Shown here piece by piece: positions 1,526-50,248 of a DNA stretch of 64,000 bases. Where the stretch lies: the NCBI GenBank assembly GCA_002269645.1, contig NIVC01000551.1, forward strand, positions 248,001 through 312,000. Reading direction: 5' to 3'. Source of the DNA: Macrostomum lignano (lineage: Eukaryota). How positions within the stretch are numbered: position 1 is the first letter of the stretch; each line of letters opens with the position of its first letter. A program made the translations under genes and the position numbers. The notes beneath the pieces were generated by a model, which was not told where the DNA came from, ran no database searches, and saw only the letters and a list, made by a program, of their open reading frames with translations.

Positions 1526-1691
1526 ATGGGATGCTTTTCCCTTGATTTCCCGCAATTTTCGGTAACGATACATTACTTACAAGAGGTCACTAAAAACCAG
1601 GCGGCATTGATAAAAGTGGAAGCAAGACTGAGAGTCAGGAGGAGGACAAAGACAGGTGTTGTAAAGATCCAGCCAAATGTGAGCTGTGCAT
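1526..1691 (+). pseudogene. Degenerate Cys-module paralog (E-like exon)
   Basis: RCCKDPAKCELC followed by a phase-2 GTAAGA donor at 1692, similar to [11 protein letters not shown] at 7329-7363. In-frame TAA at 1591 and no in-frame ATG; upstream MGCFS start is in another frame. Confidence 0.45.
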
Positions 1692-2488
1692 GTAAGACTT
1701 TGTTTGTCTGTTTTACTATCTGATTTAACATTACGAGCGTATTTTGATTTTGACCTTGTATTCAGCGTGATCATGGTGACTTTGCTTTAGTAATTCTCTA
1801 GAATTCTAATATCACCGTGTCGACGAGTTTTCACCTTGAGAGGCTGGTTTCTTAGAAACGGCCGCAGGTAAGATTTAGATGAAAAGCCGTAAATTAGCCG
1901 TGTGGTCACTCTTTCAAACGCCATTCGCTGGATTTACAAGCTAGGACCATGATTTCCAATTTTCATACCTGTCTTTATTATTCTTGGCTCATTATTCAAT
2001 ATCAAAGTTTTGTTTAAACTATGCTAAATGGATCCCAATTGATTTGATCGGTGATTTCATCACAAGAAATTTTTTTAACATGTTTATTCAGTTATTCAGC
2101 GACTTTCCCTGGCTACTCAACGGGCAAGGTTTTAAATACAAGCATGCAAGGGGTTTGGACTAAATTACATTATTAATAAACTAAGCTTAAACTCAACTTT
2201 ATAGATAAAAGTCAGTCCGAGTCCGAGATTTGTCGTTTGCCGTTCGATTATTCACCAAATTTACAAAAACTGGAGTTATTTTGATGCCATATGATTATTA
2301 TTCAGGATTGCCAATTTCAAGACTTTGGCGCACACTTCTAATCCAGTGTAAATTCCCGGATAGCGTGCACTGCAGCGCTTGCAGTCTATAAAAGTACATT
2401 CGCAGTTCTGTACGCGTAGATGCAATACGAATTATTCTAGCTCTGTAAAGAATTTTTACGCCTTCACGGTGGGGTTGTTGCAAAGTCT

Positions 2489-2680
2489 AGTAAGCTCATG
2501 TGCTGCTGTCCAGAGGGACTAATAGGAACTGCCACTTGGCGGGTTGCCAGGAACTCAAAAAGGTCAAAAACTTGTTCGCTGGTATCCTCATGCTGTTGAA
2601 AATCAAAGACGTCCCACAGACTTCTACAGAACAACACCTATTGCTGTTCTCAATTGCAACATCTTTAGTGAACTACTTAT
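2489..2680 (+). pseudogene. Possible decayed Cys-module paralog
   Basis: MCCCPEG start plus TATCCTCATGCTGTTG, which resembles the YPHCCC exon of the 43.7-kb gene with a 1-nt loss and a stop. Confidence 0.25.
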
Positions 2681-3188
2681 TCAAAATTATCAATCTGAAT
2701 GTATTACTCAATTCAATCCAACTCAATTTAAGATGGCTTTCGCTGAATTCCTAAATTCGACTTAGCTTGTACAAGGTTCTACTCCAATTCTCTCGCCCTC
2801 TCGAGTTTTCTATTCTCAAATCATTCTTTTCGTCCAACTATATGTTCAGCTATCATGCGAGTGCTAAATTAGGTTTTATTCAGCTAATGTATATTTTCAA
2901 CAAACTTTAGGCAAAAAATCAGTATTTGAGTCACTGGCGTCATGCATGCAATTATCTCGTTGATGGAAAGCAGTTTTGATGTACTTCGTACATCTACTCC
3001 GCTGAAGAGTAACCAAATTCGAACTCAAGCATAGCCCTTCGCTTACTGAGCTCGTCTAAGATTGATGAGGTACTACCTGTCATAAATATGCATTAAGGCA
3101 GCTATCAACTATTTACGAGTAGATCTATGGCCTTTTTCAACACTGTATTGTCCTGTATTTTATTGAAATTCATGCAGAGTCAACCATC

Positions 3189-4192
3189 ATGAATCAGTGT
3201 TGTCATAAACCTTTTTGTGGGATCTGCATTCAAATGTGAGTGAAGTAAATTGATAATGCTGCCATTATTTTGACACTTCTGGTTGATCTAACTACGAGCC
3301 TCTACGTAGCCTCTCAGCCTTCGACTGACGTGCCTGAGAGCTCAGAAATCAATTTTTGAGAGCTCTGGACTCCCACAACTACCAGATAGTCAGTGATAGT
3401 CAGTATCCTCACAGGTAGTTTATGTAGCATTTTCTGCTCAGGTTAATCCTATGAGCTTTTAACTGATCATAGTTAGAAAATTCAAGCTTGAAAATCGACA
3501 AAAACTTTAGTCTATGGGCTCATAGACTCATGCCCATCAAGCCAGCCATCAATCAGATCATCTAAGTATGACTGAATTTTAACTTCGATCCTGATGTTGA
3601 TGCTGATGATAAGATCGAGCTGATGCGTTAGGGGAAGAGCTGATGGAGAGCTGGATGAATAAACTCCATGTCCATTAGCCTTGTAAGTGTCTAGCTGGTC
3701 ATCTACGGTCATTTATGGTCATCCATTGTCATCTAAGAGTAAGAGTAATTTAAGAGTAGAGTCAGAAGCTTGTAAATTAGCTCATAAATCATGATGGCGC
3801 GTCAAAACATGATGCGATGAAAAAGCATTGATAATTCAAAAAAGATCCCAATAAAAAGAGGCGCTCAATTCTCTTATTTCCTTAATTTGAATTTTTGCGC
3901 TGTTTTAGGAAGCTGTCAGGAGGATGCTGCGCTCATCCAGGCGGCAAGTGTGTCTTTATTTACTATTGAACACGTTTGATTACGTAAGCAGTTGCAATTG
4001 CTGACGCAATTTTCCTCTCTACATTTTCTTTCTTTTAGTGGCTGTCGCGGCAAGAGTGTAGCAACAAGCATTGTTGCTGCTGGTGGCGCTGGAGCTGCTG
4101 TTGGTGCAGCGGCTGTTGCTGCTGCGCCTATAGTGATAGCCGGTGGAGCTGTGGTTGCTGGCATCGCCTGCATAGCTAAATTGTTTTACTAG
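3189..4192 (+). CDS. Cys-module mini-gene D1 with Gly/Ala hydrophobic tail (79 aa)
   Basis: Exons 3189-3235, 3909-3947, 4039-4192; GT-AG introns, both phase 2. MNQCCHKPFCGICIQMKLSGGCCAHPGGNGCRGKSVATSIVAAGGAGAAVGAAAVAAAPIVIAGGAVVAGIACIAKLFY. Confidence 0.75.
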
Positions 4193-4261
4193 GCTGATGT
4201 AAAGCCAACTGACTTAAATATTAAAAAAAACTCCTTTTGGTAACTGTGCTCGAACTCTACA

Positions 4262-4492
4262 AATAATATTCATAGATTGCGTCAGATTTGTGCTCCCGAC
4301 AGCTCAGTCGAGGGCTGCGTACGGCTGTTCAGTCCACTAGCACTAGCACCCATTTTACAGTTACGAGCTATGTGAACTGAAGCACTGCAGGGTAAATTGC
4401 CTTGCTCAGGGTCACAAATTGGTTTGTGTATCGAACCCCTGACCTTTGAGTCGTGAGTCCGACCCTCTAACCACTCTAGGCTACAACCCTAC
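4262..4492 (-). mobile_element. tRNA-derived CORE-type SINE
   Basis: Reverse complement has a tRNA-like head (TAGCCTAGAGTGG...GGTTCGAT) and a CORE-like block (GTGACCCTGAGCAAGGCA...CTGTAAAATGGG). Homologous to 50232-50546. Confidence 0.75.
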
Positions 4493-5018
4493 GATTTACT
4501 CTTAAATCTACTGTTTCAAATTAACCGAATTCCGAAGTATTTTTGTATCAACTATTAATATGTATAAATATTTATTCCGAATGCCTCCGAAAGGATTTTT
4601 GATGGCATCATCGTTTGTTAATGACTTTTTTTATCCTATTCTAACATTAAAACACTGACTTTAGTTAAAGATTTACGAGCAGCATATACCGAACAGACAC
4701 CGCTCATGAACTGGTCGCGTAGATTACCGGTTGGAATGCTAAAAAGTCGACAAAATTGTCGCCACACGATAATGGATTGGAAAATCAGGTAGTTCTTCAT
4801 GCAAGTTTTTCAATCGAAATGTCTTCTGGCATGTATTTTGTGCAAGACCGATGGATGCGGTACAACCTGCATGTACTGCCGTGTTTTCACCAATATTGAC
4901 TTCATTTAAAGAATCCTGGACCCAGCTTTGCTATGCTATTCGACCAAAGTGTTGGTGATTTGATTTCTCTACAGCGGGCGAGGGCTTCTGACAAACCACA
5001 AATAAATTCTTCAACACC

Positions 5019-5615
5019 ATGGGCCCAGTTTCTTCCCAATGCTGTCAAAAGAAAGATTGTGTCGAATGCAAGAGTGTGTAAGCATTTTTATTCATAACTG
5101 TTAATTGGCTTTTTAGGTACGCGGCAAGGAAGCCTCTGTGTTCGTTTCTCTCCTCAAGAAGCGACACTCAAAAGAATTCCTACTCGCCTTGCATGGTTTC
5201 GATATTAAGTTATAGAAATATCTACTCGCGCTAGCAACCTCCCTAGAGTGGGACTGGATCCTCTCTGGTTCCATTGACCCTGTCATGCCTCTGTAAAGCA
5301 GTTCTTTAACGTTTTGACAATTTTAGAAGAGACAACTGCAAAGGCTGCCGTGACGGATGCTGCGTACACCCGAGCGGCACGTAAGTCGCATTGTTTATCT
5401 GCGCAGAATCGCCAGCCCGAAGCTCTTTTCCCTAAATGCACACAGTTACTCATTTCAGAGGCTGCAAACCCGCTACAGACGATGTTGAATGTACAATGCT
5501 GTCGGCCATTGCTGGCGATGCTACCATAGATCCTGGAGTTCCAATCGAAGAGCCAAATCTAGCGAGCAGCCGTGGAGCGGATAATGCAGCTGACATCAGC
5601 ATCGATTTTATCTAG
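5019..5615 (+). CDS. Cys-module mini-gene D2 with acidic tail (89 aa)
   Basis: Exons 5019-5077, 5327-5380, 5459-5615, both introns phase 2. MGPVSSQCCQKKDCVECKSVRDNCKGCRDGCCVHPSGTGCKPATDDVECTMLSAIAGDATIDPGVPIEEPNLASSRGADNAADISIDFI. Shares GCC-x-HP-x-G-x-GC with D1. A competing AG near 5117 makes the first junction less certain. Confidence 0.65.
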
Positions 5616-5886
5616 CTGTGATCTTCGGGTCATTCTCAATGTCAGCAAAAGCTGACTGCTGACATATTTATACTTTTATATAAACTATCAATTCCTAAAC
5701 AATATCTACATTTTGTTTTATTCAGAACAAATATTTTTAATAGCAAACGCTCAAAAACTAAGGTACTGGAAAATAGGTAAGGCTAACAAAATTAGAACCC
5801 ACGCATGTGCTATTTTTGGCCACATGGAAGTTTCCTGTTCTTAGCTTATACACTTTCTATCTTATGTGTACACGCACTGTAAGTGA

Positions 5887-6009
5887 CATTGTCACACAAC
5901 CGGTGAGAGACATTACTGCTCATTCCGCTGACTCCCCTGAGCAGGCACACAAGCGCGCGGATACGTACGCAGTCATACGTACAGGCAAACACACACACAG
6001 GAGTGCACA
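5887..6009 (+). repeat. Dispersed ~125-bp repeat
   Basis: Homologous in inverted orientation to ~63178-63299 (CTCCCCTGAGCAGGCACACA...GCGCGCGGATAC). Confidence 0.7.
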
Positions 6010-6384
6010 GCGGCCCAGTGCACCAGTAAACCCAAACCTTGACTTGAATTTGGCCCAAAATTTCTTGAATTTGACTTGACTTACACGTCACTGGCAGAGT
6101 ACAAGTGCCTTCTTTGATAAAAAAACATTTTCTTTTTACATTTTTTTGAAAAAGTAATCAAAGTCTTCCTATCGAGTCCTTGAGTTGCGGTATCCATATA
6201 TATCATGTAGCTGGAAATTTTCTCTTTTTATGACCATATTATCTACAATATATTTGAAATAACAATGAATAAGCTAACAACTCTACGCTCGTAAACTCCT
6301 TTTGTCCATAAACAGTAAGCAATAGGCAGAAAGTTTGTTTGAAACACAAATGTGTCAAGATCAGAGTCAAGATAAAAAATATTT

Positions 6385-6612
6385 AGGATCAGAGAGAGTC
6401 GGGATCAGAGAGAGTCGGGATCAGAGAGAGTCGGGATCAGAGAGAGTCGGGATCAGAGAGAGTCGGGATCAGAGAGAGTCGGCATCAGAGAGAGTCGGCA
6501 TCAGAGAGTCATGATCAGAGAGTCATGATCAGAGAGTCAGGATCAGAGAGTCAGGATCAGAGAGTCAGGATCAGAGAGTCAGGATCAGAGAGTCAGGATC
6601 AGAGAGTCAGGA
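6385..6612 (+). repeat. GAGAGTCAGGATCA 14-16-bp satellite
   Basis: Direct tandem units visible. Confidence 0.95.
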
Positions 6613-6839
6613 TCCAAGTCAGTATTTTCAATCTCATAAAACTCTACAAGTGTATTCTCTATTCAATCAGCATTCAGATGCAGCATTTGTTCTCACTAAT
6701 ACCGAAATAATTATTACCAAAACTGATTGTTGACTCGGAAGTTTCGTGAGTACCAAAAATAGCACCCGATTGCTGTACATGCACGAGACATGAGGAACCG
6801 AAATCCTTTTCACTAGTCCAGGAACAGATAGCGTGTGGT

Positions 6840-6849
6840 CTATTTTTAG
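6840..6849 (+). promoter_or_regulatory. MEF2-consensus site CTATTTTTAG
   Basis: Matches CTA(A/T)4TAG ~430 bp upstream of the E1 ATG; conserved at 24073-24082 in the paralogous block. Confidence 0.4.
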
Positions 6850-7274
6850 CTCGTAGACAGTGGAAACTACCCACCTAATTTCTGGATTCTCCCAAATCAC
6901 TAGTAACAGTAGAATGCCACCAAAGCGGTACTTCTGAGGCATTCTAGTGCCAAATAACATGACGTTAAGGTCTTGATGGCGTAATGTCTGAAAAAAAGAG
7001 TTAGAATATGCATGGGGCAAGTAAGCTCGTGATTAATGTCATTTTCATAGATTACAGAAGCAGAAAAGCGTCAGAGTTAATAATGATAATAACTAACAAA
7101 TATCAAAATCAAACCATGACTCTGATATGCATTTAGAATGGGGTACTGCACTGATCCCTTTCTATACATAATACAATATGCTCGACTGTAGGTAGCTATG
7201 AAGAAGTTATTGGACAAATTTGATCACATCAAGTTTAATATCGAATTTAGTAAGCTTATTTTCAATAAGAAAGC

Positions 7275-8509
<1,235 letters not shown>

Positions 8510-9759
8510 ACATTGGCACAGGGGTCTAGCTAGATACTGCATTGAGAGACTGCAATTAATTGAGTTGGCCCGAGTAGTGACAACACCTTCACCCATCAAC
8601 AGTCCAATAGCGGCAATCATGTTTTAAAGCCGATTCTTTATTCCGAATATATATGACTGCGAGCAAATTTGAGTTTCTTGAGTAATGGCTCGTAAAAATT
8701 CAAGTTTTTTGAAGTCATTGTTCACTAGGATTTTAATACCACCTTTATGTGCTCTTTTTGAAAATTATCAAACTTGTTTTTCACCTACTCATTAATTGGT
8801 GTTTTTGTTTTTTTTATTTTTTTATTAGAGGCGGGGGTTGTGTGCACCCTGGCGGCCTCATTAAAAATTCAAAAATGTAATCTGTGTGCCGAAACCAGTT
8901 GAAAATAAATGCAAAAGAAATCATCATCCCCACAAGTCTATGTATTGTACTCGTAGTCCTGGTTACTATACGAGATACGCTGCATGTACGAGTATTACAA
9001 GGTTATAGCTGACCACAATAAACTGGGAAGACCTCAACGCCTGATCTATACTTAGCACCGGCGTTGGATTCTATATGTACGAGCGTAGATTTACCTCGCT
9101 GCGGACAAGCCATAGTGGAACTTAGCTCGTACATTAGTTAGCTACATGGACAGATTTACACTATGTACAAGCGTACATCCGTTTTATTACTTTCAATCTA
9201 GTATATTTCGCCGTCTAACTCTGTACGAGTATACTATTTCGTAGTTGAAGTACGCTAAAGCATTGTTGAATCGTAAAGCACTTTCTACAAGATGATTCAG
9301 TTGTATCGTTAAAGATAGCAGCATTTGGTTAAGATTCTTGAGTGTATCCTTGCTACAATCAAACTTTTATTGTCATCAACTTTCAGTTGTTAATTACCAA
9401 CCAACGGACAAAACTATTGATAGCAGATATTACTCGATCTCTGATTTGAATTGATGTGTTTACTTTCATAGGCTGTGATTTGTACATATACGGAACGGAG
9501 TAAGTTTTGGTGTAAGGTACGAGTAGGGTCAAGGTGGACAGAATACATGCTTTTAAAATCCCGTAGGTAGAATGGATGAGATCTGTGCTGAGAACGGGAT
9601 ATATCTGTTTATTATAGATTCTAACAATGACGTCTACATGTACAGATCGATGATGGAATTAATGAGGCACAGCCTCTGACTAGGCGTTCATATTATTTGT
9701 GGTAATCGATTTCTGTAATTTCTTTTAAAACTGACAACTCGCGCTGACACCATGCTACC

Positions 9760-9907
9760 CCATGAGGGGTATTTTCTGCCCCTCGTTGTTGGTGAGTACG
9801 CAACTCAGTAATTACTTTGACTCTCAGCAGTCACTATCAACTATGTTGTAGCGTAATTTGTTGATAAGATTGCTTGGAGCGAAGGAAGGTGCTGCTGCAA
9901 GCACTGA
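9760..9907 (+). pseudogene. A-type mini-gene A1, disabled
   Basis: Lacks the ATG-containing segment found in A2; 1-nt shift before the GTGAGT donor at 9792; acceptor AG displaced. Still encodes IAWSEGRCCCKH*. Confidence 0.65.
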
Positions 9908-10086
9908 TCAGAATATTCCGCCGCTACTGTGACCGCTTCTAACGTCTTTTGAAGTCTATTGAACATTGTTTATCAAAATTTATCCATAACTGACATTTTC
10001 AAATCTTAGCTAAAAAAATCCAATCGTTTTAGGTACAAAAAATATTTTTTAATTTTAAAACATTGTTTTAAAACATTACTTAAATA

Positions 10087-10432
10087 GTCAGTCAGTCAGT
10101 TAGTCAGTCAGTCAGTCAGTCAGTCAGTCAGTCAGTCAGTCACCCACTCACTCAAGTCAGTCAGTCAGTCACCCACTCACTCAAGTCAGTCAGTCAGTCA
10201 GTCACCCACTCACTCAAGTCAGTCAGTCAGTCAGTCACCCACTCACTCAAGTCAGTCAGTCAGTCAGTCAGTCAGTCAGACAGTCAGTCAGTCAGTCACC
10301 CACTCACTCAAGTCAGTCAGTCAGTCAGTCAGTCAGTCAGTCAGTCAGTCAGTCAGTCAGTCAGTCAGTCAGTCAGTCAGTCAGTCAGTCACCCACTCAC
10401 TTACTCAAGGCATGCAGTCAGTCAGTCAGTCA
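10087..10432 (+). repeat. (TCAG)n with ACCCACTCACTCAAG variants
   Basis: Direct tandem units. Confidence 0.95.
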
Positions 10433-10454
10433 TTATTTTTCGTACACTACTAAG

Positions 10455-10593
10455 ACAGGCCAGGAGAGCCGGAAGTTGCTGCTGCGTACATATTAATTAT
10501 TGGCGAAGAAGTATTCATCAGATTTTGATGGTTTCTGCTGTAGCAGTAAGCTGTAGCAGCTGCTGCTGTAAAATTTCCAATCGTTTTAGGTAA
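10455..10593 (+). pseudogene. Orphan T-type exon 2 (T1)
   Basis: QARRAGSCCCVHINYWRRSIHQILMVSAVAVSCSSCCCKISNRFR* after a phase-2 acceptor. No matching exon 1 found; 3' part duplicates 10010-10090. Confidence 0.6.
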
Positions 10594-12330: not shown

Positions 12331-12424
12331 TCAATAGCGTGAAAAATTCATAAAAAACAAGTCTGTCCTGCAATAATCGTTCGTTTGCTCACTCCAAATC
12401 CTAATTTTAAATCCTAAAGGTCCG

Positions 12425-24391: not shown

Positions 24392-24467
24392 ATGTGCAAA
24401 AGTGGAAGTATCTGCACTGCCAGATCTGGGCGTGCTGCCCAGATCCCGCAAACTGCGAACAGTGCCA
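24392..24467 (+). pseudogene. E-type paralog E2, frameshifted, exon 2 deleted
   Basis: [12 protein letters not shown] before a GTAAGA donor, out of frame with the ATG (76 nt). After the TCTG array the sequence joins directly to the E1 3' flank. Upstream 23840-24390 is paralogous to 6612-7270. Confidence 0.7.
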
Positions 24468-27267: not shown

Positions 27268-27640
27268 ATGAACATCTGCGAGAGCAAGCCAGCGATTGAG
27301 CAGTCGGTGCCTCCGGACAGCTGCTGCCCGTTCGGTCGGTTCGATTCATTTTCTTCTTGATGTAACTTTATACAGGAATACAGCTTAGGAATGAAGGAAA
27401 CCGAATGTAAACTGATGAAATTTTCAAAATATTTTCTTAAGAAAATGAGAGCTGAGAACTTCAATCAGAAATGCCGACTGGTGTGTTGCTGCAAGCACGG
27501 GAGCGAGCCTAAATACAAGCGTATAGCCCAGTATAAATTGCTGTGTATGTTGCTATGCTCAACATTGACAAGTTCTTTAAATTTATTCTTTCAATTTTAC
27601 AAAAAAAATTTCCTTTTCAGTGGATTACTGCAATTTCAGT
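27268..27640 (+). pseudogene. Degenerate Cys-module paralog F
   Basis: SCCPFGRFDSF (CxxC positions read TTC/TTT), followed by MRAENFNQKCRLVCCCKHG. No consistent splice path found. Confidence 0.45.
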
Positions 27641-30489: not shown

Positions 30490-31389
30490 CGTCAGTTTGA
30501 AGGGTCGGAAGTCTTAGTTCTCGCAGAGAACCTGAACGGCATCGTCTTCCCAAAAACTGTTGCTCCTCTGAAACAAAAATATGTTAAATAGCTATCTGTT
30601 TTACAAACTGGCAACAAAGCTTTTTCTCTCCGCCTGATTTAAATATTCAAAACTGTACGAGCGTTATCTGTGTGCCGAAATCAGTTGAAAAGAAATGTGA
30701 AAGAAATCAACATCCCCTCAAGTCTATGTATTGTAGTCATACGAAGTAAGCTCCATGTGTTACGAAGTAACTGATTGCAATAAACTAGTCCATACATAGA
30801 ACAGGCGTTGGATTCTATATATAGATTCACTGTTTTTTATTTCGCTGCGTACAAGCCATAGTGGAACATAGCTCGTACATTAGCTAGCTGCATGGCTGAA
30901 GATTTCCACTATCTACAAGCGTACTTATATCGCTGTACTATGCATAGTACATCCGTTTAATTACTTTCAATCTAGTTTAATGAGCAGCAATGCTCTATGT
31001 CTAACTCTGTAGAAATACTAATTGCAATACAATATACGGTTTCGTATTAGAGGTATGTTAAAGCACTGTTGAATCGTAAAGCACTACAAGATGATTCAGT
31101 TGGTAGTTAAAGTTAGCAGCATTCGGTTAAGATTCTTGGGGGTATCCTTGCTACAATTGAACTTTTATTGTCATCAAATTTCAGTGCTTGATAATAACCA
31201 GCCAATGGACAAACTATTGATAGTAGGCATTACTCGATCTCTGATTTGAATTGATTTCTTAATCGTTTTTTACACTCATAGGCTGTGATTTGCACAGATG
31301 AAAAGCAAATTTTGGTGTAAGGTACGAGTATGGGCAGGTGGACAGAATACATGCTTTTAAAATCCCGTAGGTAGAATGGATGAGATCTG

Positions 31390-31524
31390 TGCTGCCTTCA
31401 TCTTTGGTAAGTACGGAAGTTAATAATTGCATTCAGTCTCAGTATAGTCAGTAGTGAATAAATTTTTACGCAATTTGTTTATAGGATTGCTTGGAGCGAA
31501 GGAAGGTGCTGCTGCAGGCACTGA
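31390..31524 (+). pseudogene. A-type paralog A4, exon 1 deleted
   Basis: Donor at 31407 and exon IAWSEGRCCCRH* (31485-31524) retained. Deletion joins the upstream promoter block directly to the exon 1 end. Confidence 0.65.
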
Positions 31525-31529
31525 GTCGT

Positions 31530-32106
31530 TAGTCAGTCACCCACTCACTCAAGTCTGTCCCTCACTCAAGTTAGTCAGTCACTCAAGTCAGTCAGTCACT
31601 CAAGTCAGTCACTCACTCAAGTCAGTCAGTCACTCAAGTCAGTCACTCACTCAAGTCTGTCACTCACTCAAGTCAGTCACTCACTCAAGTTAGTCAGTCA
31701 CTCAAGTCAGTCAGTCACTCAAGTCAGTCACTCACTCAAGTCAGTCAGTCACTCAAGTCAGTCACTCACTCAAGTCTGTCACTCACTCAAGTCAGTCAGT
31801 CACTCAAGTCTGTCAGTCACTCAAGTCTGTCACTCACTCAAGTCAGCCAGTCACTCAAGTCAGTCAGTCACTCAAGTCAGTCAGTCACTCAAGTCTGTCA
31901 CTCACTCAAGTCAGTCAGTCACTCAAGTCAGTCACTCACTCAAGTCTGTCACTCGCTCAAGTCAGTCAGTCACTCAAGTCTGTCACTCACTCAAGTCTGT
32001 CACTCACTCAAGTCAGCCAGTCACTCAAGTCAGTCAGTCACTCAAGTCAGTCAGTCACTCAAGTCAGTCAGTCACTCAAGTCAGTCAGTCACTCAAGTCA
32101 GTCACT
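31530..32106 (+). repeat. CACTCAAGTCAGTCAGT ~17-bp repeat
   Basis: Direct tandem units. Confidence 0.93.
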
Positions 32107-32126
32107 ATTTTTCGTACATTACTCAG

Positions 32127-32235
32127 ACAGGCCAGGAGAGCTGGGATTTGCTGTTGTGTACACTGGCGAAGATTTCATCTGGTTTCTGCGGTTGCTGCTG
32201 TTACTGGTATTGTGACGTCAATTTTGAAAGTTTGA
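32127..32235 (+). pseudogene. Orphan T-type exon 2 (T4)
   Basis: QARRAGICCCVHWRRFHLVSAVAAVTGIVTSILKV*, open with a phase-2 acceptor. No T-type exon 1 upstream. Confidence 0.6.
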
Positions 32236-37641: not shown

Positions 37642-38340
37642 GACAGTCCGCAGCTACCAGAAATGGAAGTTTAGTGCCAGCCAGTCGAGGCCCTGCTGCT
37701 GCCTGGCAGTCCCCTCCAAACGGTGCTGCCACGTGCGCTGGTGCAGAAAATGCGAAGAGAAAATGAGGAGAGAGGGTGGAGGGAGAGGGAGAGAGGGAGT
37801 CAGGAGGGAGAGAGGGAGAGGGGCAGGGCGAGAGGGAGAGAAGGGGAGAGAGAGGGAGAGAGAGAGAGAGAGGGGGAGAGAGAAAGAGAGGGAGAGGGGA
37901 GGGAGAGAGGGAGTCGGGAGGAAGAGAGGGAGAGGGGGAGGGCGAGAGGGAGAGAAGGGAGAGGGAGAGAGTGAGAGAGAGAGGGGGAGAGAGAAAGAGA
38001 GGGAGAGAGGAGGGAGAGAGGGAGTCAGGAGGGAGAGAGGGAGAGGGGGAGGGCGAGAGGGAGAGAAGGGGAGAGAGGGTGGAGGGAGAGAGAGAGGGAG
38101 TTAGGAGGGAGAGAGGGAGAGGGGCAGGGCGAGAGGGAGAGAAGGGAGAGAGGGTGGAGGGAGAGGGAGAGGGCGAGTCAGTGTCGATTACGAGCGCAGA
38201 TGCCAAGTTCTTACTGAAATCTCACTCCCCTTAGCATTCTTAACTCAACTCCCCTTGACTTCTATTGCAGCCTGAAGGGCTACTGCTGTTGCAAGCACTA
38301 CTGTTTCAAGACGCACAGCGAAGCCTGCGGGATTCTTTAA
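37642..38340 (+). pseudogene. Partial double-module gene C5 (exons 2-3)
   Basis: TVRSYQKWKFSASQSRPCCCLAVPSKRCCHVRWCRKCEEKM (37642-~37767, no GT donor; a GA tract follows) and LKGYCCCKHYCFKTHSEACGIL* (38271-38340). Exon 1 not found. Confidence 0.6.
37765..38175 (+). repeat. GA-rich purine tract
   Basis: GGGAGAGA-type low complexity with internal duplications. Confidence 0.92.
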
Positions 38341-38884: not shown

Positions 38885-38922
38885 ATGGAGTGCTGCAGAA
38901 GACGCAACTGCAATTATTGCTC
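38885..38922 (+). pseudogene. C4: orphan exon 1 (MECCRRRNCNYCS)
   Basis: Phase-2 GTGAGT donor; paralog of 43701-43738. Downstream exons appear deleted relative to the 43.4-45.2 kb block. Confidence 0.65.
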
Positions 38923-40368: not shown

Positions 40369-40419
40369 CATGTTGGAACAAGGTTGATCAAGGTACAACG
40401 AGATTGATTGGATCGAGAA

Positions 40420-40792
40420 CTGACGTTCCTGACAATCCAAACTGACGTTCCTGACAACCCAAACTAACGTTCCTGACAACCCAAACTGATATTCCTGACA
40501 ATCCAAACTGACGTTCCTGACAACCCAAACTAACGTTCCTGACAACCCAAACTGACGTTACCGACAACTCAAACTGATATTCCTGACAACCCAAACTGAT
40601 ATTCCTTACAACCCAAACTGACGTTCCTGACAACCCAAACTGACGTTCCTGACAACCCAATCTGACGTTCCTGACAACCCAAACTGATATTCCTTACAAC
40701 CCAAACTGATAGTCCTTACAACCCAAACTGACGTTCCTGACAACCTAAACTGACGTTCCTGACAATCCAAACTGACGTTCCTGACAACCCAA
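40420..40792 (+). repeat. 22-bp minisatellite CTGACGTTCCTGACAACCCAAA
   Basis: About 17 tandem units. Confidence 0.95.
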
Positions 40793-41515: not shown

Positions 41516-41988
41516 ATGTCGACCTACTCTGCAGCAGGCTGTTGCAACTGCGTGAAAAAACGGAACGACTGCGAAAACTGCGCGTAAGATATGGATTCAC
41601 TGTTCGACGTTTATTCGGCGATTAATTTTATTTTTCAACTTTCAAGCTTATCAACTTTGAAAATTTCAGACGGACCAAGGCTTACGTTGCTTGGCAGAAT
41701 ACTAAGCTGGGTCCTCACGAGCAGCAGAGGCCTCCCTGCTGCTACATTCATCACGGGAAGAACCTCACTGATGGCATGTGCTGCTATCCAGTTACCTGTC
41801 CAGTCTGCAATAAGTATCACAGGTTTGTGCAACCCGTTTTGATAGACTTCCAAAGACGGCTCTGCGCTTAAAATCAATTGTCTATGTAAATTTTTTTCAG
41901 CTTCTTTTTTCCGGACGGGGTAAATCAACGACCTTATCCACATTGTTGCTGCAAGCACTACAGCAAGTCGACGAATTATAAAAATTGA
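41516..41988 (+). CDS. Double-module Cys/His gene C1 (102 aa)
   Basis: Exons 41516-41583, 41670-41822, 41901-41988, both introns phase 2. MSTYSAAGCCNCVKKRNDCENCARTKAYVAWQNTKLGPHEQQRPPCCYIHHGKNLTDGMCCYPVTCPVCNKYHSFFFPDGVNQRPYPHCCCKHYSKSTNYKN. Confidence 0.8.
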
Positions 41989-42394
41989 TTATCACTCACG
42001 ATTAACACTGACTAAAGATATTAATTAATGATTCAATAATGACCTTGATGTGTGCTCGATGCGTTAAATGCATGACCTATTCATGCCTTGTTTTTGTCTC
42101 TATGAAAAATAAATTGGCCTGAAGTTAAAGTCACCCACTTCAACTAACTACAACTCAGTCGTTTAAAGTCCAAAAGTGTCATCAGCTACTCAGTTGTTGC
42201 ACGAAGTCTAGTTGCGTACACACGTGCGTACACACACTCCTACGCGGTAGATTCCTGTTCTATTTTTAGAAATGATGTCCATATTATTCCGAGAGAGCGC
42301 ACAAAACGCTTTGAGAAAAATACCGGCCGGGGTAACAACTGCCTGAGGGAATGCCACAGCTTACGAGTATAATAGACCACCCACCAAGTTTCTG

Positions 42395-42994: not shown

Positions 42995-43363
42995 CCCTGT
43001 ACCTGCCAACTATGCTACTTATTTAACCTCAATGTATTGCCCCATAAACATATTTCATTCTAACAGGTAAGCAAGTTTATGAATTTTTCATCTTTAAACC
43101 TACTAATAGCATCGTTATTAAGAGTCTACTTAACGGAAATTTCTTGCTACTGTTGTGTTTATAAAAGTCAAAGGTGCTCGCGATGTAGGAAGCAAATAAA
43201 GAAGGTTTGTCTAGAATTAAAGTCACAAAACTTAAGAGAAGTTAAATTTAATTTCAGGTTCATTAAAAACTATATCGTCTTGAAGAATAGCGAGTTATTA
43301 AATATTACCAACAGGCAGTGTGGATCAAGTATTACGATCGTACCATTTAAACCACAAAAGTGA
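42995..43363 (+). pseudogene. Possible degenerate Cys-module paralog G
   Basis: PCTCQLC before a GTAAGC donor at ~43068, and SCYCCVYKSQRCSRC within ORF 43079-43363. No convincing start codon. Confidence 0.35.
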
Positions 43364-43700: not shown

Positions 43701-44770
43701 ATGAAGTGCTGCAAAGAGCTCTGCTGCAGCGAATGCTCGTGAGTCACTATCGAGGTATCTTGGTTGGTTGTCTGACAGGCTAGGGTATAATATGGCTTGT
43801 CCACAGGTGTAACTAAGTTTGGTCTAACAGGTATTAACCTTCATCTAACAGGTATTAACATTTATCTAACAGGTATTAACGTTCATCTAACAGGTATTAA
43901 CCTTCATCTAACAGGTATTAACATTTATCTAACAGGTATTAACGTTCATCTAACAGGTATTAACCTTCATCTAACAGGTATTAACCTTCATCTAACAGGT
44001 ATTTACCTTCATCTAACAGGTATTAACCTTCGTCTAACAGGTATTAACCTTCATCTAACAGGTTTATTAACCTTCATCTAACAGGTATTTACCTTCATCT
44101 AACAGGTATTAACCTTCCTCTAACAGGTGTATTAACCTTCATCTAACAGGTTTATTAACCTTCATCTAACAGGTATTTACCTTCATCTAACAGGTTTATT
44201 AACCTTCATCTAACAGGTATTTACCTTCATCTAACAGGTGTATTAACCTTCATCTAACAGGTATTTACCTTCATCTAACAGGTGTATTAACCTTCATCTA
44301 ACAGGTATTGACCTTTATCTAACAGGTATTAACCTTCATCTAACAGGTATTAACCTTCCTCTAACAGATATCAGCCTTGATCTAACAGGTGTTTACCTTG
44401 ATTTAGCAGGTATCCTGAATCCTAAACTACATATGCATATATATTACGCAACGCAATCTCAACGCAGAAGAATCGAAGATTACGCCATCATGCGCAATGT
44501 TCGAAGACCCTGCTGCTGCAGACACGCCCGCAGGTGCTGGTTTCATCCAGATGATCTGTTTTCCTGCTGCTACAACCGCTGGTGCGAGCTCTGCTATGAA
44601 CGAAATTGGTAAGTTAACTGATTAAGCAATCATTTCCTAAAGATGCTCAAGCTGAAAACCTGCATCTTGAACTTGTAAATTTCAGCTTCGACGGTCCCAG
44701 AAGACGGAACAGTAGAAACGGCTATCCTCATTGCTGTTGCAAGCACCACTTTTATGAGTACGAGAGCTGA
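43701..44770 (+). CDS. Double-module Cys/His gene C3 (87 aa)
   Basis: Exons 43701-43738, 44468-44608, 44686-44770, both introns phase 2. MKCCKELCCSECSRIEDYAIMRNVRRPCCCRHARRCWFHPDDLFSCCYNRWCELCYERNCFDGPRRRNSRNGYPHCCCKHHFYEYES. Confidence 0.8.
43815..44412 (+). repeat. 21-bp intronic minisatellite CTAACAGGTATTAACCTTCAT
   Basis: Tandem units in C3 intron 1; shorter array at ~38990-39115. Confidence 0.95.
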
Positions 44771-45342
44771 GAATTGAAATGCAGGACAACTGATGAATGG
44801 CTGGATAAATGAGTTAACACAAAAAACAGTGATTTCGAATTAATTAAGTCATATATGTGTTCCATAATTCTATTTTGATTTACTAGCTGTTAAAATCGGC
44901 TTTAAACACGGTAGATCCCAGTTCTATTTTTAGCCTTGAGCGAGGTCCAATTTCTATTTCTATCACATACTTTCTTATGTACTTTATTTTTGTTAAATGC
45001 ACGAAATTTTACTAAATATTTACTGCATTTTCTATACGTGATCTTTGATTTACGGTGTTTAAAGGTTATTTTTTAAATCAACTTGCTAATTTTGTTCGTC
45101 CATCACTTGAACGAAATTTAAAAAATACGAGTCATTTTTAGAGCTTTGCATTTCTTTGAGTACTCATATTGTCTATTCGGGGTGGTTAAAACAGTGGGAA
45201 AAGGTAAATAGATTGTTGTGGAAAGGGACAGATATCTGTAGAATGAGGTAGATCCCTGTAGTATGAGGTACATCCTTGTTGAATAGGGTAGATACCTGTA
45301 GCATAGGGGTAGATCCCTGGAGAATGGGTAGATCGTGTCGGA

Positions 45343-46300
45343 ACGAGGTTGATCAAGGGTAGAACGAGGTTGATCAAGGGTAGAACGAGGTTGATCAAGG
45401 GTAGAACGAGGTTGATCAAGGGTAGAACGAGGTTGATCAAGGGTAGAATGAGGTTGATCAAGGGTAGAACGAGGTTGATCAAGGGTAGAACGAGGTTGAT
45501 CAAGGGTAGAACGAGGTTGATCAAGGGTAGAATGAGGTTGATCAAGGGTAGAACGAGGTTGATCAAGGGTAGAATGAGGTTGATCAAGGGTAGAACGAGG
45601 TTGATCAAGGGTAGAACGAGGTTGATCAAGGGTAGAATGAGGTTGATCAAGGGTAGAATGAGGTTGATCAAGGGTAGAATGAGGTTGATCAAGGGTAGAA
45701 GGAGGTTGATCAAGGGTAGAATGAGGTTGATCAAGGGTAGAATGAGGTTGATCAAGGGTAGAACGAGGTTGATCAAGGGTAGAACGAGGTTGATCAAGGG
45801 TAGAACGAGGTTGATCAAGGGTAGAATGAGGTTGATCAAGGGTAGAACGAGGTTGATCAAGGGTAGAATGAGGTTGATCAAGGGTAGAACGAGGTTGATC
45901 AAGGGTAGAACGAGGTTGATCAAGGGTAGAATGAGGTTGATCAAGGGTAGAATGAGGTTGATCAAGGGTAGAATGAGGTTGATCAAGGGTAGAAGGAGGT
46001 TGATCAAGGGTAGAATGAGGTTGATCAAGGGTAGAATGAGGTTGATCAAGGGTAGAATGAGGTTGATCAAGGGTAGAATGAGGTTGATCAAGGGTAGAAC
46101 GAGGTTGATCAAGGGTAGAACGAGGTTGATCAAGGGTAGAATGAGGTTGATCAAGGGTAGAATGAGGTTGATCAAGGGTAGAATGAGGTTGATCAAGGGT
46201 AGAAGGAGGTTGATCAAGGGTAGAATGAGGTTGATCAAGGGTAGAATGAGGTTGATCAAGGGTAGAACGAGGTTGATCAAGGGTAGAATGAGGTTGATCC
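45343..46300 (+). repeat. 21-bp minisatellite GGTAGAA(C/T)GAGGTTGATCAAG
   Basis: About 45 near-perfect units; 21-bp period explains the long spurious ORFs. Confidence 0.97.
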
Positions 46301-46775: not shown

Positions 46776-47285
46776 ATGTCTGAAAAAAGGGAGAAAATTT
46801 GCTGTCCCTGCGTTGAAAAGAATTCGAATACCAGGTGCCAGATGTGCCTGTAAGTAAATTCTAACTTTCTTCTATGGTATCATTCTAAAATACAGAACTT
46901 TCTGAGATCCAAATCTTCTTCTAAATTCTGAAATGAAATTCTAAAATTCTAAAGTTTTGAAATGAGACTCCATTGCTGCTCCAATTTTTTTCAGTCGAAT
47001 GAGAGCATACATCACTTGGCAGAATGAGAAACTGGGGACAGCCGATGCCCTGAGATTCTCGTGTTGCTATATTCACCACGCGCAGGATAGGCTGAATGAG
47101 AATGGCTGCTGCAAGGCGGGCTGCACAGTTTGCAGAAGATATCGAAGGTAGGCCGAATTGATTCTCAGTACATTCGCCAGATTTTTTATCAGACAAAGCG
47201 CCAGTCTAAAAATATGCATTTCAGTTACCTATGCTGCTACTGCTGCTGCCACCACTGCTTTGCCGCTCAGCATGATAAACAGTAG
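46776..47285 (+). CDS. Double-module Cys/His gene C2 (95 aa)
   Basis: Exons 46776-46849, 46995-47147 (153 nt, same as C1), 47225-47285. MSEKREKICCPCVEKNSNTRCQMCLRMRAYITWQNEKLGTADALRFSCCYIHHAQDRLNENGCCKAGCTVCRRYRSYLCCYCCCHHCFAAQHDKQ. Alternative acceptor at 47192. Confidence 0.78.
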
Positions 47286-47975: not shown

Positions 47976-48054
47976 ACAGTTTTAGTTAATTATTTTAATT
48001 AAATCTTCGCTGTAAGGATCAACATAAATTTAAGCATATGATAAAATTTTTCAG

Positions 48055-48154
48055 TGAATTTTACCACAATGGAAACCATAGACAATCTCCGCACTGCTGT
48101 TGCTACCATTTCTACTGCCATCAGTGCCAGACTCCGAGCTGCTCAGTTCTATGA
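48055..48154 (+). pseudogene. Orphan terminal exon H
   Basis: Phase-2 TTTTTCAG acceptor; EFYHNGNHRQSPHCCCYHFYCHQCQTPSCSVL*, homologous to exon 3 of C1, C3 and C6. Confidence 0.6.
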
Positions 48155-48462
48155 GATCATTGAGTTCAGGAACTGCTGCCTCCATCAGTTTGACTAATCT
48201 AATGAGAATTGTTTTTTTTTCTTTTTTTTGACTCGATCATTGACTTTTTAGCTTTGAAGTGCATTCTTTATTTTGCAAGAATTGTAACCTATGGATTAGC
48301 GACCAACAGGTGAATACAGCTGTTCCCTAACAATAAACTCATCGACTGAGACTCACAAAAGGACTTACTAATTCACTCATCGACTTGCTCTTCAACTCAC
48401 CCAATCTCTAAGCTAAATAGATCATAAAATGCTTGTAAAAACCATGCCCATGACAAACCCTA

Positions 48463-49090
48463 CGATTAGGGTCATACAGCAGTCACATTAGGGTCATGAA
48501 GCAGTCACGTTAGGGTCATACAGCAGTCACATTAGGGTCATGCAGCAGTCACGTTAGGGTCATACCGCAGTCACATTAGGGTCATGAAGCAGTCACGTTA
48601 GGGTCATACAGCAATAACAGTGGGTCATACAGCAGTCACGTTAGGGTCATACAGCAGTCACGTTAGGGTCATACAGCAATAGCAGTGGGTCATACAGCAG
48701 TCACGTTAGGGTCATGCAGCAGTCACGTTATGGTCATACAACATTAACAGTGGGTCATGCAGCAGTCTTGTTAGGGTCATACAGTAGTCATGTTAGGGTC
48801 ATACAGCAGTCATGTTAGGGTCATACAGCAGTCATGTTAGGGTCATGCAGCAGTCTTGTTAGGGTCATACAGTAGTCATGTTAGGGTCATACAGCAGTCA
48901 TGTTAGGGTCATACAGCAGTCATGTTAGGGTCATGCAGCAGTCATGTTAGGGTCATACAGCAGTCACGTTAGGGTCATGCAGCAGTCGTGTTCTGGTCAT
49001 GCAGCATTCACGTTAGGGTCATGCAGCAGTCTTGTTAGGGTCATGCAGCAATCATGTTAGGGTCATGCAGCAGTCATGTTAGGGTCATGA
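48463..49090 (+). repeat. 22-bp minisatellite GTTAGGGTCATACAGCAGTCAC
   Basis: About 28 units, most containing TTAGGG. Confidence 0.95.
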
Positions 49091-49293
49091 ACCGTTCACA
49101 GTTTGTGAGGTGTTTTTGCCTGTTGCTGAATAAGGTACTGGCTCAACGGGATCCATGAATTGAAACTGAGGTAAGGAGGTACTGCCTAATAATCTGATGG
49201 ATATAAAAAGTTTTGCTTCCCAGTGGAAGTATCAATTGATTTAGCTACCTTGTTCCAACTACAATCTGTTGAGTGATTTAACTCATAATTGAA

Positions 49294-50248
49294 ATGCCAA
49301 TCTGCTGTCCTTGCGTTGGACACCGAAGATGCGTTCGCTGCAAGTGAGTAGCTGCGTGTGAGTAGCTGCGTGTGAGTAGCTGCGTGTGAGTAGCTGCGTG
49401 TGAGTAGCTGCGTGTGAGTAGCTGCGTGTGAGTAGCTGCGTGTGAGTAGCTGCGTGTGAGTAGCTGCGTGTGAGTAGCTGCGTGTGAGTAGCTGCGTGTG
49501 AGTAGCTGCGTGTGAGTAGCTGCGTGTGAGTAGCTGCGTGTGAGTAGCTGCGTGTGAGTAGCTGCGTGTGAGTAGCTGCGTGTGAGTAGCTGCGTGTGAG
49601 TAGCTGCGTGTGAGTAGCTGCGTGTGAGTAGCTGCGTGTGAGTAGCTGCGTGTGAGTAGCTGCGTGTGAGTAGCTGCGTGTGAGTAGCTGCGTGTGAGTA
49701 GCTGCGTGTGAGTAGCTGCGTGTGAGTAGCTGCGTGTGAGTAGCTGCGTGTGAGTAGCTGCGTGTGAGTAGCTGCGTGTGAGTAGCTGCGTGTGAGTAGC
49801 TGCGTGTGAGTAGCTGCGTGTGAGTAGCTGCGTGTCAGTTTATCTGAATTTCGATGTCTTCCATTTTTGAAAAAAAAACGTTTCAGAATTATGATGAAAT
49901 ACATCAAATGGCAAAAAAAAAACTGGGCGTGAGCATGAGAACCCAGTGCTGGTGCTGCTATCTTCATCACGAGCAGAATATTCTGGCTGATGACGGTTGC
50001 TGCAAAAAAAAATGCAGTGTCTGCAACAACAACCGCAGGTGAGCGCAAAAAGATACTCGTATTTTGAAGTTAGCTCATTTTTTTAGGTTTTAGCTCGTAG
50101 ATATTATATAGCCAACTTAGCAACAACGAAAAATTGTAAATTTACCCCTTTCAGCAAGTACTTCTACAGCGGAAATCAACGCAAGAAGTACCGCAAATGC
50201 TGCTGCTACCATTACTTTCAAAGTCGCTATAGTGGGGTTGTAGCCTAG
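49294..50248 (+). CDS. Double-module Cys/His gene C6 (one 1-nt indel in an A-run)
   Basis: Exons 49294-49343, 49887-50038 (152 nt versus 153 in C1/C2; A10 run), 50155-50248. Corrected: MPICCPCVGHRRCVRCKIMMKYIKWQKKKLGVSMRTQCWCCYLHHEQNILADDGCCKKKCSVCNNNRSKYFYSGNQRKKYRKCCCYHYFQSRYSGVVA. Confidence 0.68.
49344..49833 (+). repeat. 14-bp tandem repeat GTGAGTAGCTGCGT x35
   Basis: Perfect units starting exactly at the C6 exon 1 donor. Confidence 0.97.

Follow-up and report, generated by a model that had tools for sequence, protein, structure and literature searches.

What kind of gene family gives rise to a long row of very short, cysteine-rich open reading frames (ORFs), each split by introns? The question is raised by positions 248001-312000 of contig NIVC01000551.1 of the flatworm Macrostomum lignano (assembly GCA_002269645.1), a stretch of 64,000 nucleotides that we refer to as the window and whose own numbering is used for all positions. 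An initial annotation had described there a hidden cluster of about 25 mini-genes encoding an unrecognised Cys/His module. Gene models were built by hand from the DNA after six-frame translation and a motif-pattern search, and this yielded 11 intact ORFs spliced by GT-AG introns, all on the + strand and 27-102 amino acids (aa) long, which is the same number and size range as first described (Table 1; genes are named by their start positions). The number of mini-genes had to be lowered, since our recount gives 11 intact genes, one frameshifted gene (g49294) and about eight degenerate or partial copies, that is, about 20 loci with about 25 modules.

The modules follow a single order, M-x(1-17)-[CC/CxC/CCxC]-x(4-8)-CxxC, a phase-2 intron, a linker and CC(C)-x-H, and occur once or twice per gene. 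The exons carrying the first half-site (module A) all end in phase 2, 0 to 4 codons past CxxC, so that the intron phase reported initially is true of every one of them. Their donors are GTAAGT, GTGAGT, GTAAGA or GTAAGC, together with GTATGT in g33373 and GTTTGT at the second module-A half-site (A2) of g41516. The linker that leads to the second half-site (the B motif) measures between 4 and about 24 residues. In the module alignment, the second Cys of the pair and both Cys of CxxC are invariant, and one B-motif Cys and the His are at least 90% conserved. The CC pair lies within the first 4-20 residues of each start exon, the first Cys being found at residues 3-20; Cys content is 10-26%, and CC, CxC, CCxC, CxxC and CCC are all represented.

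Six sequence types share this common design. Type I (11472, 15961, 33373) consists of the module alone, in 27-28 aa, and type II (7275) starts with MGNIGS. Type III (3189, 5019 and an annotated 88-aa member upstream of the window) has a third exon that encodes an Ala/Gly/Val-rich hydrophobic tail or an acidic one, and in type IV (13391, 29361) a C-terminal hydrophobic helix is added. Types V and VI (41516, 43701, 46776, 49294) have two modules, with B1 and A2 fused within the middle exon. Polar or charged residues (K, D, E, N, P) characterise the loops of types II, III, V and VI. Because the phase-2 intron right after CxxC is common to all of them and the modules can be aligned, we consider the six types to be one family.

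Pattern matches in the six-frame search of the window were found almost exclusively on the + strand, and most of them directly precede a stop or a GT. There are 22 A motifs on the + strand and 1 on the - strand, compared to a mean of 0.45 in 100 first-order Markov shuffles; the corresponding values are 21, 1 and 2.3 for B motifs, and 15, 0 and 0.02 for complete start exons (ATG, motif, phase-2 GT). Motif enrichment and strand bias are far above chance. The upstream 88-aa member is located about 3-4.5 kb before the window start (L005 414-2010, equal to NIVC01000551.1:243452-245048) and reads MGLCCSVEDCPRCKSV / RDERERRDGYRDGCCKHPNKK / GCEPATDS, followed by an acidic tail (slashes mark exon junctions). 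With this further, annotated member, the cluster runs past the left edge of the window.

The assembly is redundant, and collinear copies of the cluster are present on two other contigs, L002 on NIVC01000905.1 and L003 and L004 on NIVC01002882.1; our duplicate comparisons use L002 and L003, the third copy, L004, being entered only in part. In these comparisons, 71 Cys columns are conserved and 2 changed, while 292 of the 396 other columns are conserved and 104 changed (Fisher p 6e-7). The dN/dS check that the initial annotation had proposed gave a pooled value of 0.52 for seven close pairs, and 0.78 after the Cys, His and Met codons were dropped. For g15961 and its L002 copy MLTPCCPWGILCGNCRAAWREGRCCCRH the ratio is 0.14, with 7 synonymous and about 6 non-synonymous changes and a pS of 0.44; for g13391 and g29361 it is 0.44, and several other pairs have values >1 outside the ligand codons. 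Between types, pS is about 0.8, that is, synonymous sites are saturated. The duplicates keep ATG, stop, GT-AG sites and frame, and the indels between them are of 3 or 12 nt. The sole exception is found in the L003 homologue of g3189, whose ORF is kept with a 12-nt and a 3-nt indel and with a 1-nt indel just before the stop that alters only the last residues. Apart from this last case, the synonymous TGC/TGT changes and the indels in multiples of three that were noticed initially are confirmed.

Within the annotated scope that we covered (window positions 1-15615 and 31516-51988), GenBank holds models at four family loci (g41516, g5019, g43701 and g49294), of which only that of g41516 is complete and correct; on the duplicate contigs, at least nine family loci have models. 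The GenBank annotation of this assembly was obtained by StringTie/TACO genome-guided RNA-seq assembly followed by TransDecoder (PMC5730564), and the four loci therefore have transcript support. The models P0001 (at g41516) and P0008 (at g5019) both map to contig NIVC01000551.1, and from their coordinates the window again falls at 248001-312000. That these are real genes that code for protein is supported by the conservation of Cys columns, the in-frame indels, the dN/dS below 1 and the RNA-seq-based annotation of four members. For ten of the 11 intact products, there is no exact-sequence match among about 15 billion proteins, which makes the word hidden largely fair, except for the four loci with GenBank models.

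A property of the family that is absent from the initial annotation is that its loops evolve faster than its introns. Between the window and its duplicates, exons diverge by 7.8% and aligned non-exon DNA by 3.6% (Fisher p 1e-12). Exon 1 of type I diverges by 30-32%, compared to 12-15% in its flanks, and a five-way alignment of type I genes shows visibly stronger conservation in the intron and the upstream 100 nt than in the inter-cysteine codons. In the L003 homologue of g11472, MASNCCPLGIFCPFCWIAWSQGRCCCRH, both inter-cysteine loops of exon 1 are replaced (SWYYL by PLGIF and LR by PF) and residue 4 changes from P to N; none of the 7 Cys is lost, and the 77-nt intron and exon 2 are retained. 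Strong constraint acts solely on the 7 Cys and the His, with frame, start, stop and splice sites also retained, and the residues between Cys and His turn over at or above the rate of neutral DNA. Since exons diverge more than their flanks while the Cys are kept, the constraint is on the scaffold, and the loops are relaxed or under diversifying selection. The copies themselves have been duplicated, shuffled and pseudogenised: the segment at about 6.4-17.6 kb is duplicated onto 23.6-34.5 kb, and several copies are dead, in agreement with the birth-and-death evolution proposed initially.

The divergence of the window from the duplicate contigs forms a mosaic of sharply bounded segments, in which values of 0% (37-39 kb) and of about 20% can lie only a few kb apart (window 33070-42013 compared with L002 1432-10499, and window 1-12089 with L003 4735-20161). 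At one of these boundaries, no difference over 41459-41784 is followed by 11 in 31 nt. The type I gene of L002 has flanks orthologous to those of g33373 and an exon 1 that resembles that of g15961. This mosaic suggests gene conversion among paralogues.

Searches for relatives outside the species returned no described family. Fourteen family proteins had no Pfam-A match at E up to 10, and a search of NCBIfam gave no family either; neither a single protein nor an 18-module profile had a sequence match in the PDB, and Rfam and tRNA scans gave no match. An exhaustive HMMER search of 1.84 billion representative proteins with a two-module profile recovered M. lignano members and two weak matches, P0005 and P0006, which we rejected as spurious because both are repetitive, one consisting of C-type-lectin repeats. 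When the single-module alignment and the type III protein P0007 served as queries in word-indexed searches, only M. lignano entries were returned, as was the case with a profile of four two-module proteins; these searches covered 5.8 billion clustered and 1.84 billion representative proteins, libraries so large that a single 34-position module is too short to reach significance. Other Macrostomum species are probably represented only by transcriptomes outside these libraries. Judged from these sequence comparisons, the family is lineage-specific and so far detectable only in M. lignano. The initial annotation had called it lineage-specific and expanded, and had suggested a module profile against Pfam and protein collections as a check; only M. 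lignano paralogues emerged from the billions of proteins searched. The term unrecognised stands as regards family matches and has to be qualified by the handful of members already deposited as hypothetical proteins.

One duplicate-contig paralogue, P0002, is labelled "DUF2769 domain-containing" in UniRef. DUF2769 resembles the family in being small and Cys-rich with CxxC-type motifs, and the label (PF10967) was not reproduced when P0001-P0004 were run with hmmscan against the current Pfam-A, where no family was found at E up to 10. Similar-looking motifs are known in PLAC8 (CCxxxxCPC), the copper-fist Zn module (C-x2-C-x8-C-x-H) and Cox17 (CCxC). PLAC8, CYSTM, the copper-fist Zn module and Cox17 were considered as relatives and rejected, being unsupported by the Pfam scans and different in spacing.

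Where the products reside was assessed from their termini. The first 15 residues have a Kyte-Doolittle hydropathy of 0.7 or less in nine of the 11 intact proteins, and N-terminal hydropathy is high only in the type IV proteins g13391 and g29361, which start with MFCVCP and MVCLCP and for which a signal peptide is ambiguous. The initial statement that no member has a signal peptide is true for the nine and ambiguous for these two. C-terminal 15-mers reach 2.6-2.8 in g3189 (2.6), g13391 and g29361, and the other eight intact ORFs have no such tail; transmembrane-like hydrophobic tails are also found on two orphan exons (10455-10593 and 32127-32235, called B' exons). This assessment of tail anchors is one of hydropathy only, and g13391 and g29361 are hydrophobic at the N-terminus as well. 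In g13391, g29361 and the B' exons, CCCxH lies 6-8 residues ahead of the transmembrane-like tail. The PROSITE pattern for N-myristoylation, G-{EDRKHPFYW}-x2-[STAGCN]-{P}, is present in g7275 (MGNIGST) and in the upstream member (MGLCCSV) and absent from g5019 (MGPVSS, with Pro at position 3) and from the 1526 start (MGCFSL); Gly2 is lacking in the other eight intact ORFs. Part of the family is therefore, by its predicted features, probably membrane-tethered. The earlier description of the proteins as cytosolic agrees with the nine N-termini that are not signal-like, and the hydrophobic tails and myristoylation patterns of some members speak against it as a general description.

We tentatively favour, at somewhat less than an even chance, the reading that the cluster is a tandem birth-and-death array encoding a minimal, fast-diversifying scaffold that is stabilised by metal (Zn/Cu) and often membrane-tethered. 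The products would stay on the cytosolic side, as the nine N-termini without signal-like character suggest. For a module that has about 28 residues, 7 Cys and 1 His among them, and no signal peptide, disulfides and a hydrophobic core would both be unavailable; the Cys7His scaffold would be too small to fold alone in a reducing compartment, and bound metal would hold it together. One Cys3His or Cys4 site would be made up of the CxxC knuckle and C-x(1-2)-H; from the extra CC or CCC, either a second site or a Zn/Cu(I)-thiolate cluster would arise, with one or two Zn per mini-domain. Tethering could follow two routes, N-myristoylation beside the CC pair (MGNIGS, MGLCCS) or a tail-anchor-like C-terminal helix just past CCCxH; the tailed proteins of about 50 aa would insert post-translationally, leaving the Cys module in the cytosol. 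The role may be that of a binding or buffering scaffold. Across the synonymous-saturated types, C-x2-C is kept together with a Cys pair that precedes it by 4-8 residues and a His that follows the last Cys after 1-2 residues. This surviving pattern looks like the ligand pattern of a zinc knuckle or small zinc site, and it would be unneeded for acylation. We prefer metal over lipid because this zinc-knuckle-like pattern is kept and because the polar and charged loops are as in thioneins.

Several observations weigh against this reading. An AlphaFold2 model of P0001, built on a 5-sequence alignment, has a pLDDT of 50 and is uninformative as to ligand geometry. Aromatic residues are frequent (5 of 28 in g11472, 12 of 102 in g41516 and 12 of 87 in g43701), and the type I peptides, rich in Trp, Tyr and Leu, appear unlike thioneins and nearer to interfacial membrane segments. 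With a half-site linker that varies from 4 to about 24 residues, the spacing of a metal site is not rigid. The shared Cys/His motif of the initial annotation holds generally, but g7275 has GGGCVH, with a single Cys, and g33373 has CCCRQ, where His is replaced by Gln. The metal-responsive element (MRE) TGCRCNC occurs 41 times in the window compared to 48.9 expected, with no clustering ahead of the genes. Transcript-based models are absent for eight of the 11 intact ORFs. Finally, the N-terminal CC pair, the MG starts and a CCC beside a hydrophobic tail are classic contexts of S-palmitoylation.

These contexts lead to the main rival, a possible though somewhat unlikely one, which could be compatible with metal binding. 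It holds that the products are S-acylated membrane micro-proteins, whose Cys clusters are palmitoylation sites and which act as small lipid-anchored scaffolds on the cytosolic face of membranes. Known precedents for such sites are GAP-43 (MLCC), AKAP18-alpha (MGQLCC), SNAP-25 (CGLCVCPC) and cysteine-string protein. A CC pair near the beginning of every start exon speaks for this rival, and so do Cys adjacent to the myristoylation patterns MGNIGS (g7275) and MGLCCS (upstream member), CCCxH at a short distance from the transmembrane-like tails (g13391, g29361 and the B' exons), the hydrophobic, aromatic N-termini of types I and IV, and the free turnover of the remaining residues, which suits a lipid anchor. 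However, S-acylation needs neither a fixed C-x2-C spacing nor a His, and both are conserved across types; the loops around the Cys are highly charged in types II, III, V and VI, and the second module of the two-module proteins lies 50-90 residues from the N-terminus.

A bolder form of the metal-binding reading, which we regard as unlikely, is that this is a metal-thiolate micro-protein family of Macrostomum's own, perhaps born de novo from TGC/GCN-rich microsatellites, that replaces metallothioneins and whose loops are under positive selection. Parasitic flatworms have been reported to have no recognisable metallothionein genes (PMC3561135), and such a replacement would therefore fill a gap. 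If it is true, the family would be an intracellular counterpart of the conserved-scaffold, hypervariable-loop design of toxins and defensins, with smallest members of 27-28 aa and with membrane-tethered versions.

Another reading, by analogy with keratin-associated proteins, is that the products cross-link a hardened intracellular structure such as the stylet, the sperm bristles or the sperm tail, which seems distinctly doubtful. Keratin-associated proteins and Drosophila Mst84D/Mst87F are small, cytosolic, Cys-rich, tandem and fast-evolving, and harden their structures via disulfide or zinc bridges. The lack of a signal peptide in most members, the tandem cluster with its flux in copy number and loops that outpace introns, a tempo typical of reproductive proteins, would all be in line with such a function; one statement in the literature on Macrostomum describes reproduction-related genes as fast-evolving (PMC7336406). 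Against it, repeat motifs like those of KRTAP or CGP are absent, the transmembrane-like tails and myristoylation motifs misfit a bulk matrix protein, and no link to expression data emerged from the GenBank locus tags, which were found neither in the papers searched nor in the supplements searched of M. lignano expression papers.

The last alternative, that these are mostly non-functional young ORFs in which duplicated (TGC)n/(GCN)n low-complexity DNA mimics a Cys-rich family while the transcripts are non-coding or the peptides unstable, would account for CCC from TGCTGCTGC-like strings and Ala-rich tails from GCN runs (the frame deciding between CCCC, AAAA and LLLL), for exons not better conserved than their flanks, for the dN/dS that rises to 0.78 without Cys, His and Met codons, for the many copies already dead and for the eight intact ORFs that have no transcript-based models, but it is improbable in view of conservation that is Cys-specific (71 of 73 columns), of ATG, stop, GT-AG and intron phase kept in every type with indels in frame, of one pair with a dN/dS of 0.14 and 7 synonymous changes, of isolated CxxC Cys outside any repeat, and of four members in an RNA-seq-derived annotation.

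Table 1. Loci of the Cys/His module family and repeat-filled spans in the window. Slashes mark exon junctions; "stop" follows the last residue of a terminal exon.
Feature	Span	Strand	Exons	Sequence and state	GenBank model
Degenerate or uncertain type II-like copy	1526..2599	+		ATG (MGCFSL) at 1526	
Module-A exon of the 1526 locus	1627-1691	+		ends DRCCKDPAKCELC, then GT donor	
Possible B-like exon of the 1526 locus	2491-2599	+		CCCPEG, without His	
g3189, intact, 79 aa	3189..4192	+	3189-3235, 3909-3947, 4039-4192	GT-AG, frame; MNQCCHKPFCGICIQ / MKLSGGCCAHPGG / NGCRGKS, then 40-residue Ala/Gly/Val hydrophobic tail	none
g5019, intact, 89 aa	5019..5615	+	5019-5077, 5327-5380, 5459-5615	GT-AG, frame; MGPVSSQCCQKKDCVECKSV / RDNCKGCRDGCCVHPSG / TGCKPATDD, then acidic tail	Mlig032788g1 (P0008, 79 aa): exons 2-3 the same, exon 1 in another frame
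g7275, intact, 46 aa	7275..8880	+	7275-7363, 8829-8880	exon 2 reads QGGGCVHPGGLIKNSKM	none
Pseudogenised type I unit	9752..10593	+	A 9752-9791, B 9869-9907, orphan B' 10455-10593	exon A degenerate, Cys lost; B IAWSEGRCCCKH stop, acceptor displaced 1 nt; B' QARRAGSCCCVH, then hydrophobic, Cys-rich tail	
g11472, intact, 28 aa	11472..11635	+	11472-11518, 11596-11635	MASPCCSWYYLCLRC / WIAWSQGRCCCRH	
g13391, intact, 51 aa	13391..14809	+	13391-13431, 14695-14809	GT-AG, frame; MFCVCPIPLCPLC / VAAKLAGSCCCVHWGKRAH, then transmembrane-like tail LVFAVAAAAAVLSVFALTP	
g15961, intact, 28 aa	15961..16126	+	15961-16007, 16087-16126	MSTPCCPWGILCRNC / RDAWDEGRCCCRH	
Frameshifted copy of g7275 exon 1	24392..24467	+		13-nt deletion between ATG and motif	
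Lone B-like exon	27469..27537	+		KCRLVCCCKHGSEPKYKR; partner exon not identified	
g29361, intact, 53 aa	29361..30489	+	29361-29407, 30375-30489	GT-AG, frame; MVCLCPRPLYLCVPC / QVARIAGSCCCVHYWRRAH, then tail LVFAVSAAAAVLPVVVLIL	
Degenerate type I unit	31379..32235	+	B 31485-31524, orphan B' 32127-32235	exon A mostly deleted; B IAWSEGRCCCRH stop left; B' QARRAGICCCVHWRRFH, then tail	
g33373, intact, 27 aa	33373..33533	+	33373-33416, 33494-33533	MSTSCCALKKCPNC / RAARRNNRCCCRQ	
5'-truncated two-module relic	37642..38340	+	37642-37762, last exon 38271-38340	first exon ends RPCCCLAVPSKRCCHVRWCRKCEEK, without phase-2 donor; last exon LKGYCCCKHYCFKTHSEACGIL stop	
Exon 1 only	38885..38922	+		MECCRRRNCNYC, then GT; downstream exons deleted compared to paralogue g43701	
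g41516, intact, 102 aa, two modules	41516..41988	+	41516-41583, 41670-41822, 41901-41988		BOX15_Mlig003191g1 (P0001), 100% identity
Dead exon A	43139..43189	+		ISCYCCVYKSQRCSRCR; ATG and donor lost	
g43701, intact, 87 aa, two modules	43701..44770	+	43701-43738, 44468-44608, 44686-44770		5'-truncated 67-aa model only
g46776, intact, 95 aa, two modules	46776..47285	+	46776-46849, 46995-47147, 47225-47285		none
Orphan last exon	48055..48154	+		EFYHNGNHRQSPHCCCYHFYCHQCQTPSCSVL stop; belongs to the dead gene at 43139	
g49294, two modules, frameshifted	49294..50248	+	49294-49343, 49887-50038, 50155-50248	1-nt shift in A10 run of exon 2, otherwise intact	65-aa model beginning past the frameshift
Repeat-filled spans	7384-8360, 13474-14673, 22911-23841, 27642-28886, 29469-30355, 35984-37587				
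Repeat-filled spans, continued	39567-40794, 43823-44413, 45341-46299, 48466-49088, 49344-49839				

Some of the loci in Table 1 call for comment. The initial annotation placed the beginning of the cluster at 1526; a module-A exon is indeed present there, but the ATG at 1526 shares the frame of the motif only if one assumes a 65-nt intron with a weak acceptor, for which there is no support. The L003 duplicate provides no test of this model because it is 98.6% identical. The rebuilt g5019 model agrees with P0007, its annotated type III homologue. A read-through of g11472 into the Cys-rich stretch past its TGA (AAFEQHCCCCQCHCRHC) was considered and rejected, since this stretch is a (GCT/TGC)n low-complexity run that is unconserved in L003. 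The two orphan B' exons have intact AG acceptors and ORFs that fit a phase-2 donor, lie downstream of dead type I units and encode QARRAG(S/I)CCCVH followed by a hydrophobic tail. They could be alternative 3' exons for an upstream gene, for example g7275, whose own B exon has lost a Cys. Among the broken copies, the exon at 38885 has an intact relative on a different contig (P0004, 85 aa), the intact relative of g49294 is P0003 (95 aa), and the intact counterpart of the dead exon at 43139 is found in L002, where its start exon (MSSCCYCVNRRQRCRRC) is closely followed by an annotated 71-aa gene.

Most of the longer introns and spacers are filled by long micro- or minisatellites, such as (TGTC)n, (TCAG)n, 14-mers and 20-22-mers; the g7275 intron carries a 1-kb (TGTC)n repeat and the g13391 intron a 1.2-kb (TCAG)n repeat, while the short introns of the type I and two-module genes are repeat-free. 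The long spurious ORFs in the ORF list arise from these satellites, which probably also explain the loss of repeat-overlapping transcript models from the GenBank annotation. GCN/TGC-rich low-complexity DNA encodes Ala-rich tails and CCC at 4072-4125, 11636-11701, 14760-14800 and 30440-30480, and these tails and CCC motifs may have grown from trinucleotide repeats.

The wider context, with GT-AG introns containing micro- and minisatellites, non-LTR retrotransposons and a fibrinogen-C exon, fits a metazoan genome. One non-LTR retrotransposon family is present in several copies, at 56000-62540, at 17000-23000 (older and broken), at 1-500 and at 19311-20183, with a GC content of about 58% compared to about 40% in the surroundings. 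The element at 56-62.5 kb has its ORFs in separate frames (gag-like, 57254-58723; endonuclease/RT, 58893-61304; RNase H, 61365-62429). A 3' fragment at 168-500 is 79% identical to 62211-62537, and 19311-20183 is an inverted 90% copy of 55888-56768. On the + strand, 54493-55074 is an open exon for a fibrinogen C-terminal globular domain (PF00147, E 3.8e-35), presumably part of a fibrinogen-related gene that adjoins the cluster on its downstream side. A repeat some 140 bp long with a tRNA-like start (GGGGTTGTAGCCTAGTGGTTAGGGC) is located at 4361-4495 (-), downstream of g3189, and at 50229-50368 (+), right after the g49294 stop, as well as at L002 837-1046 and 12354-12562. ARAGORN calls no tRNA in it, and it is probably a tRNA-derived SINE.

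These results indicate that most of a multigene family has escaped the transcriptome-based annotation of a model flatworm, because ORFs of 27-95 aa that are split by repeat-filled introns fall below ORF-calling thresholds. Its novelty is one of sequence and design, not of kind, as lineage-specific small Cys-rich families are common, and it is aptly described as a tandem family of Cys7His micro-proteins that is taxonomically restricted, for the most part unannotated and hypervariable in its loops. In its clean and testable design, 7 Cys and a His are combined with an intron phase that is conserved, with loops that vary freely and, optionally, with a lipid or transmembrane tether. Metal binding by the module would make the family the first metallothionein-like system known from Platyhelminthes, and acylation would make it an unusual set of micro-proteins that stand alone and are anchored by lipid. 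M. lignano offers transgenesis, RNAi and in situ tools, with which both hypotheses are directly testable.

Besides DUF2769, four known systems can be compared with this family. It resembles metallothioneins in its very small Cys-rich products with CC, CxC, CxxC and CCC motifs and no signal peptide, in its intron-split, copy-number-variable tandem cluster and in the polar loops of several types. It differs from them in having no Pfam match, metallothionein families included, a conserved His, low Cys density in the longer members, transmembrane-like tails or myristoylation motifs, no MRE enrichment and abundant aromatic residues, of which metallothioneins, by their classical definition, have few or none. 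With conotoxins and defensins, it shares a conserved Cys framework and hypervariable loops, the type I intron and 5' flank being more conserved than the inter-Cys codons. Those toxins, however, are secreted prepropeptides with a signal and disulfides, whereas the flatworm proteins mostly have neither signal nor propeptide and probably remain in a reducing compartment. Dual-acylation motifs (GAP-43, AKAP18-alpha, the MGC of the Src family, SNAP-25 and cysteine-string protein) are similar in their N-terminal Cys pairs or clusters, to which the two members with MG starts and the Cys adjoining a membrane-like tail correspond, but they are short anchors on larger proteins, while the flatworm Cys module is nearly the whole protein, has a fixed CxxC and a conserved His, and can be present as a second copy in the middle of the protein. 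Finally, KRTAP and Mst84D/Mst87F are likewise small intracellular Cys-rich products of tandem clusters with rapid duplication and loss; the flatworm genes have no sequence or repeat similarity to them and are set apart by their conserved introns, their Cys7His pattern and their membrane-tether variants.

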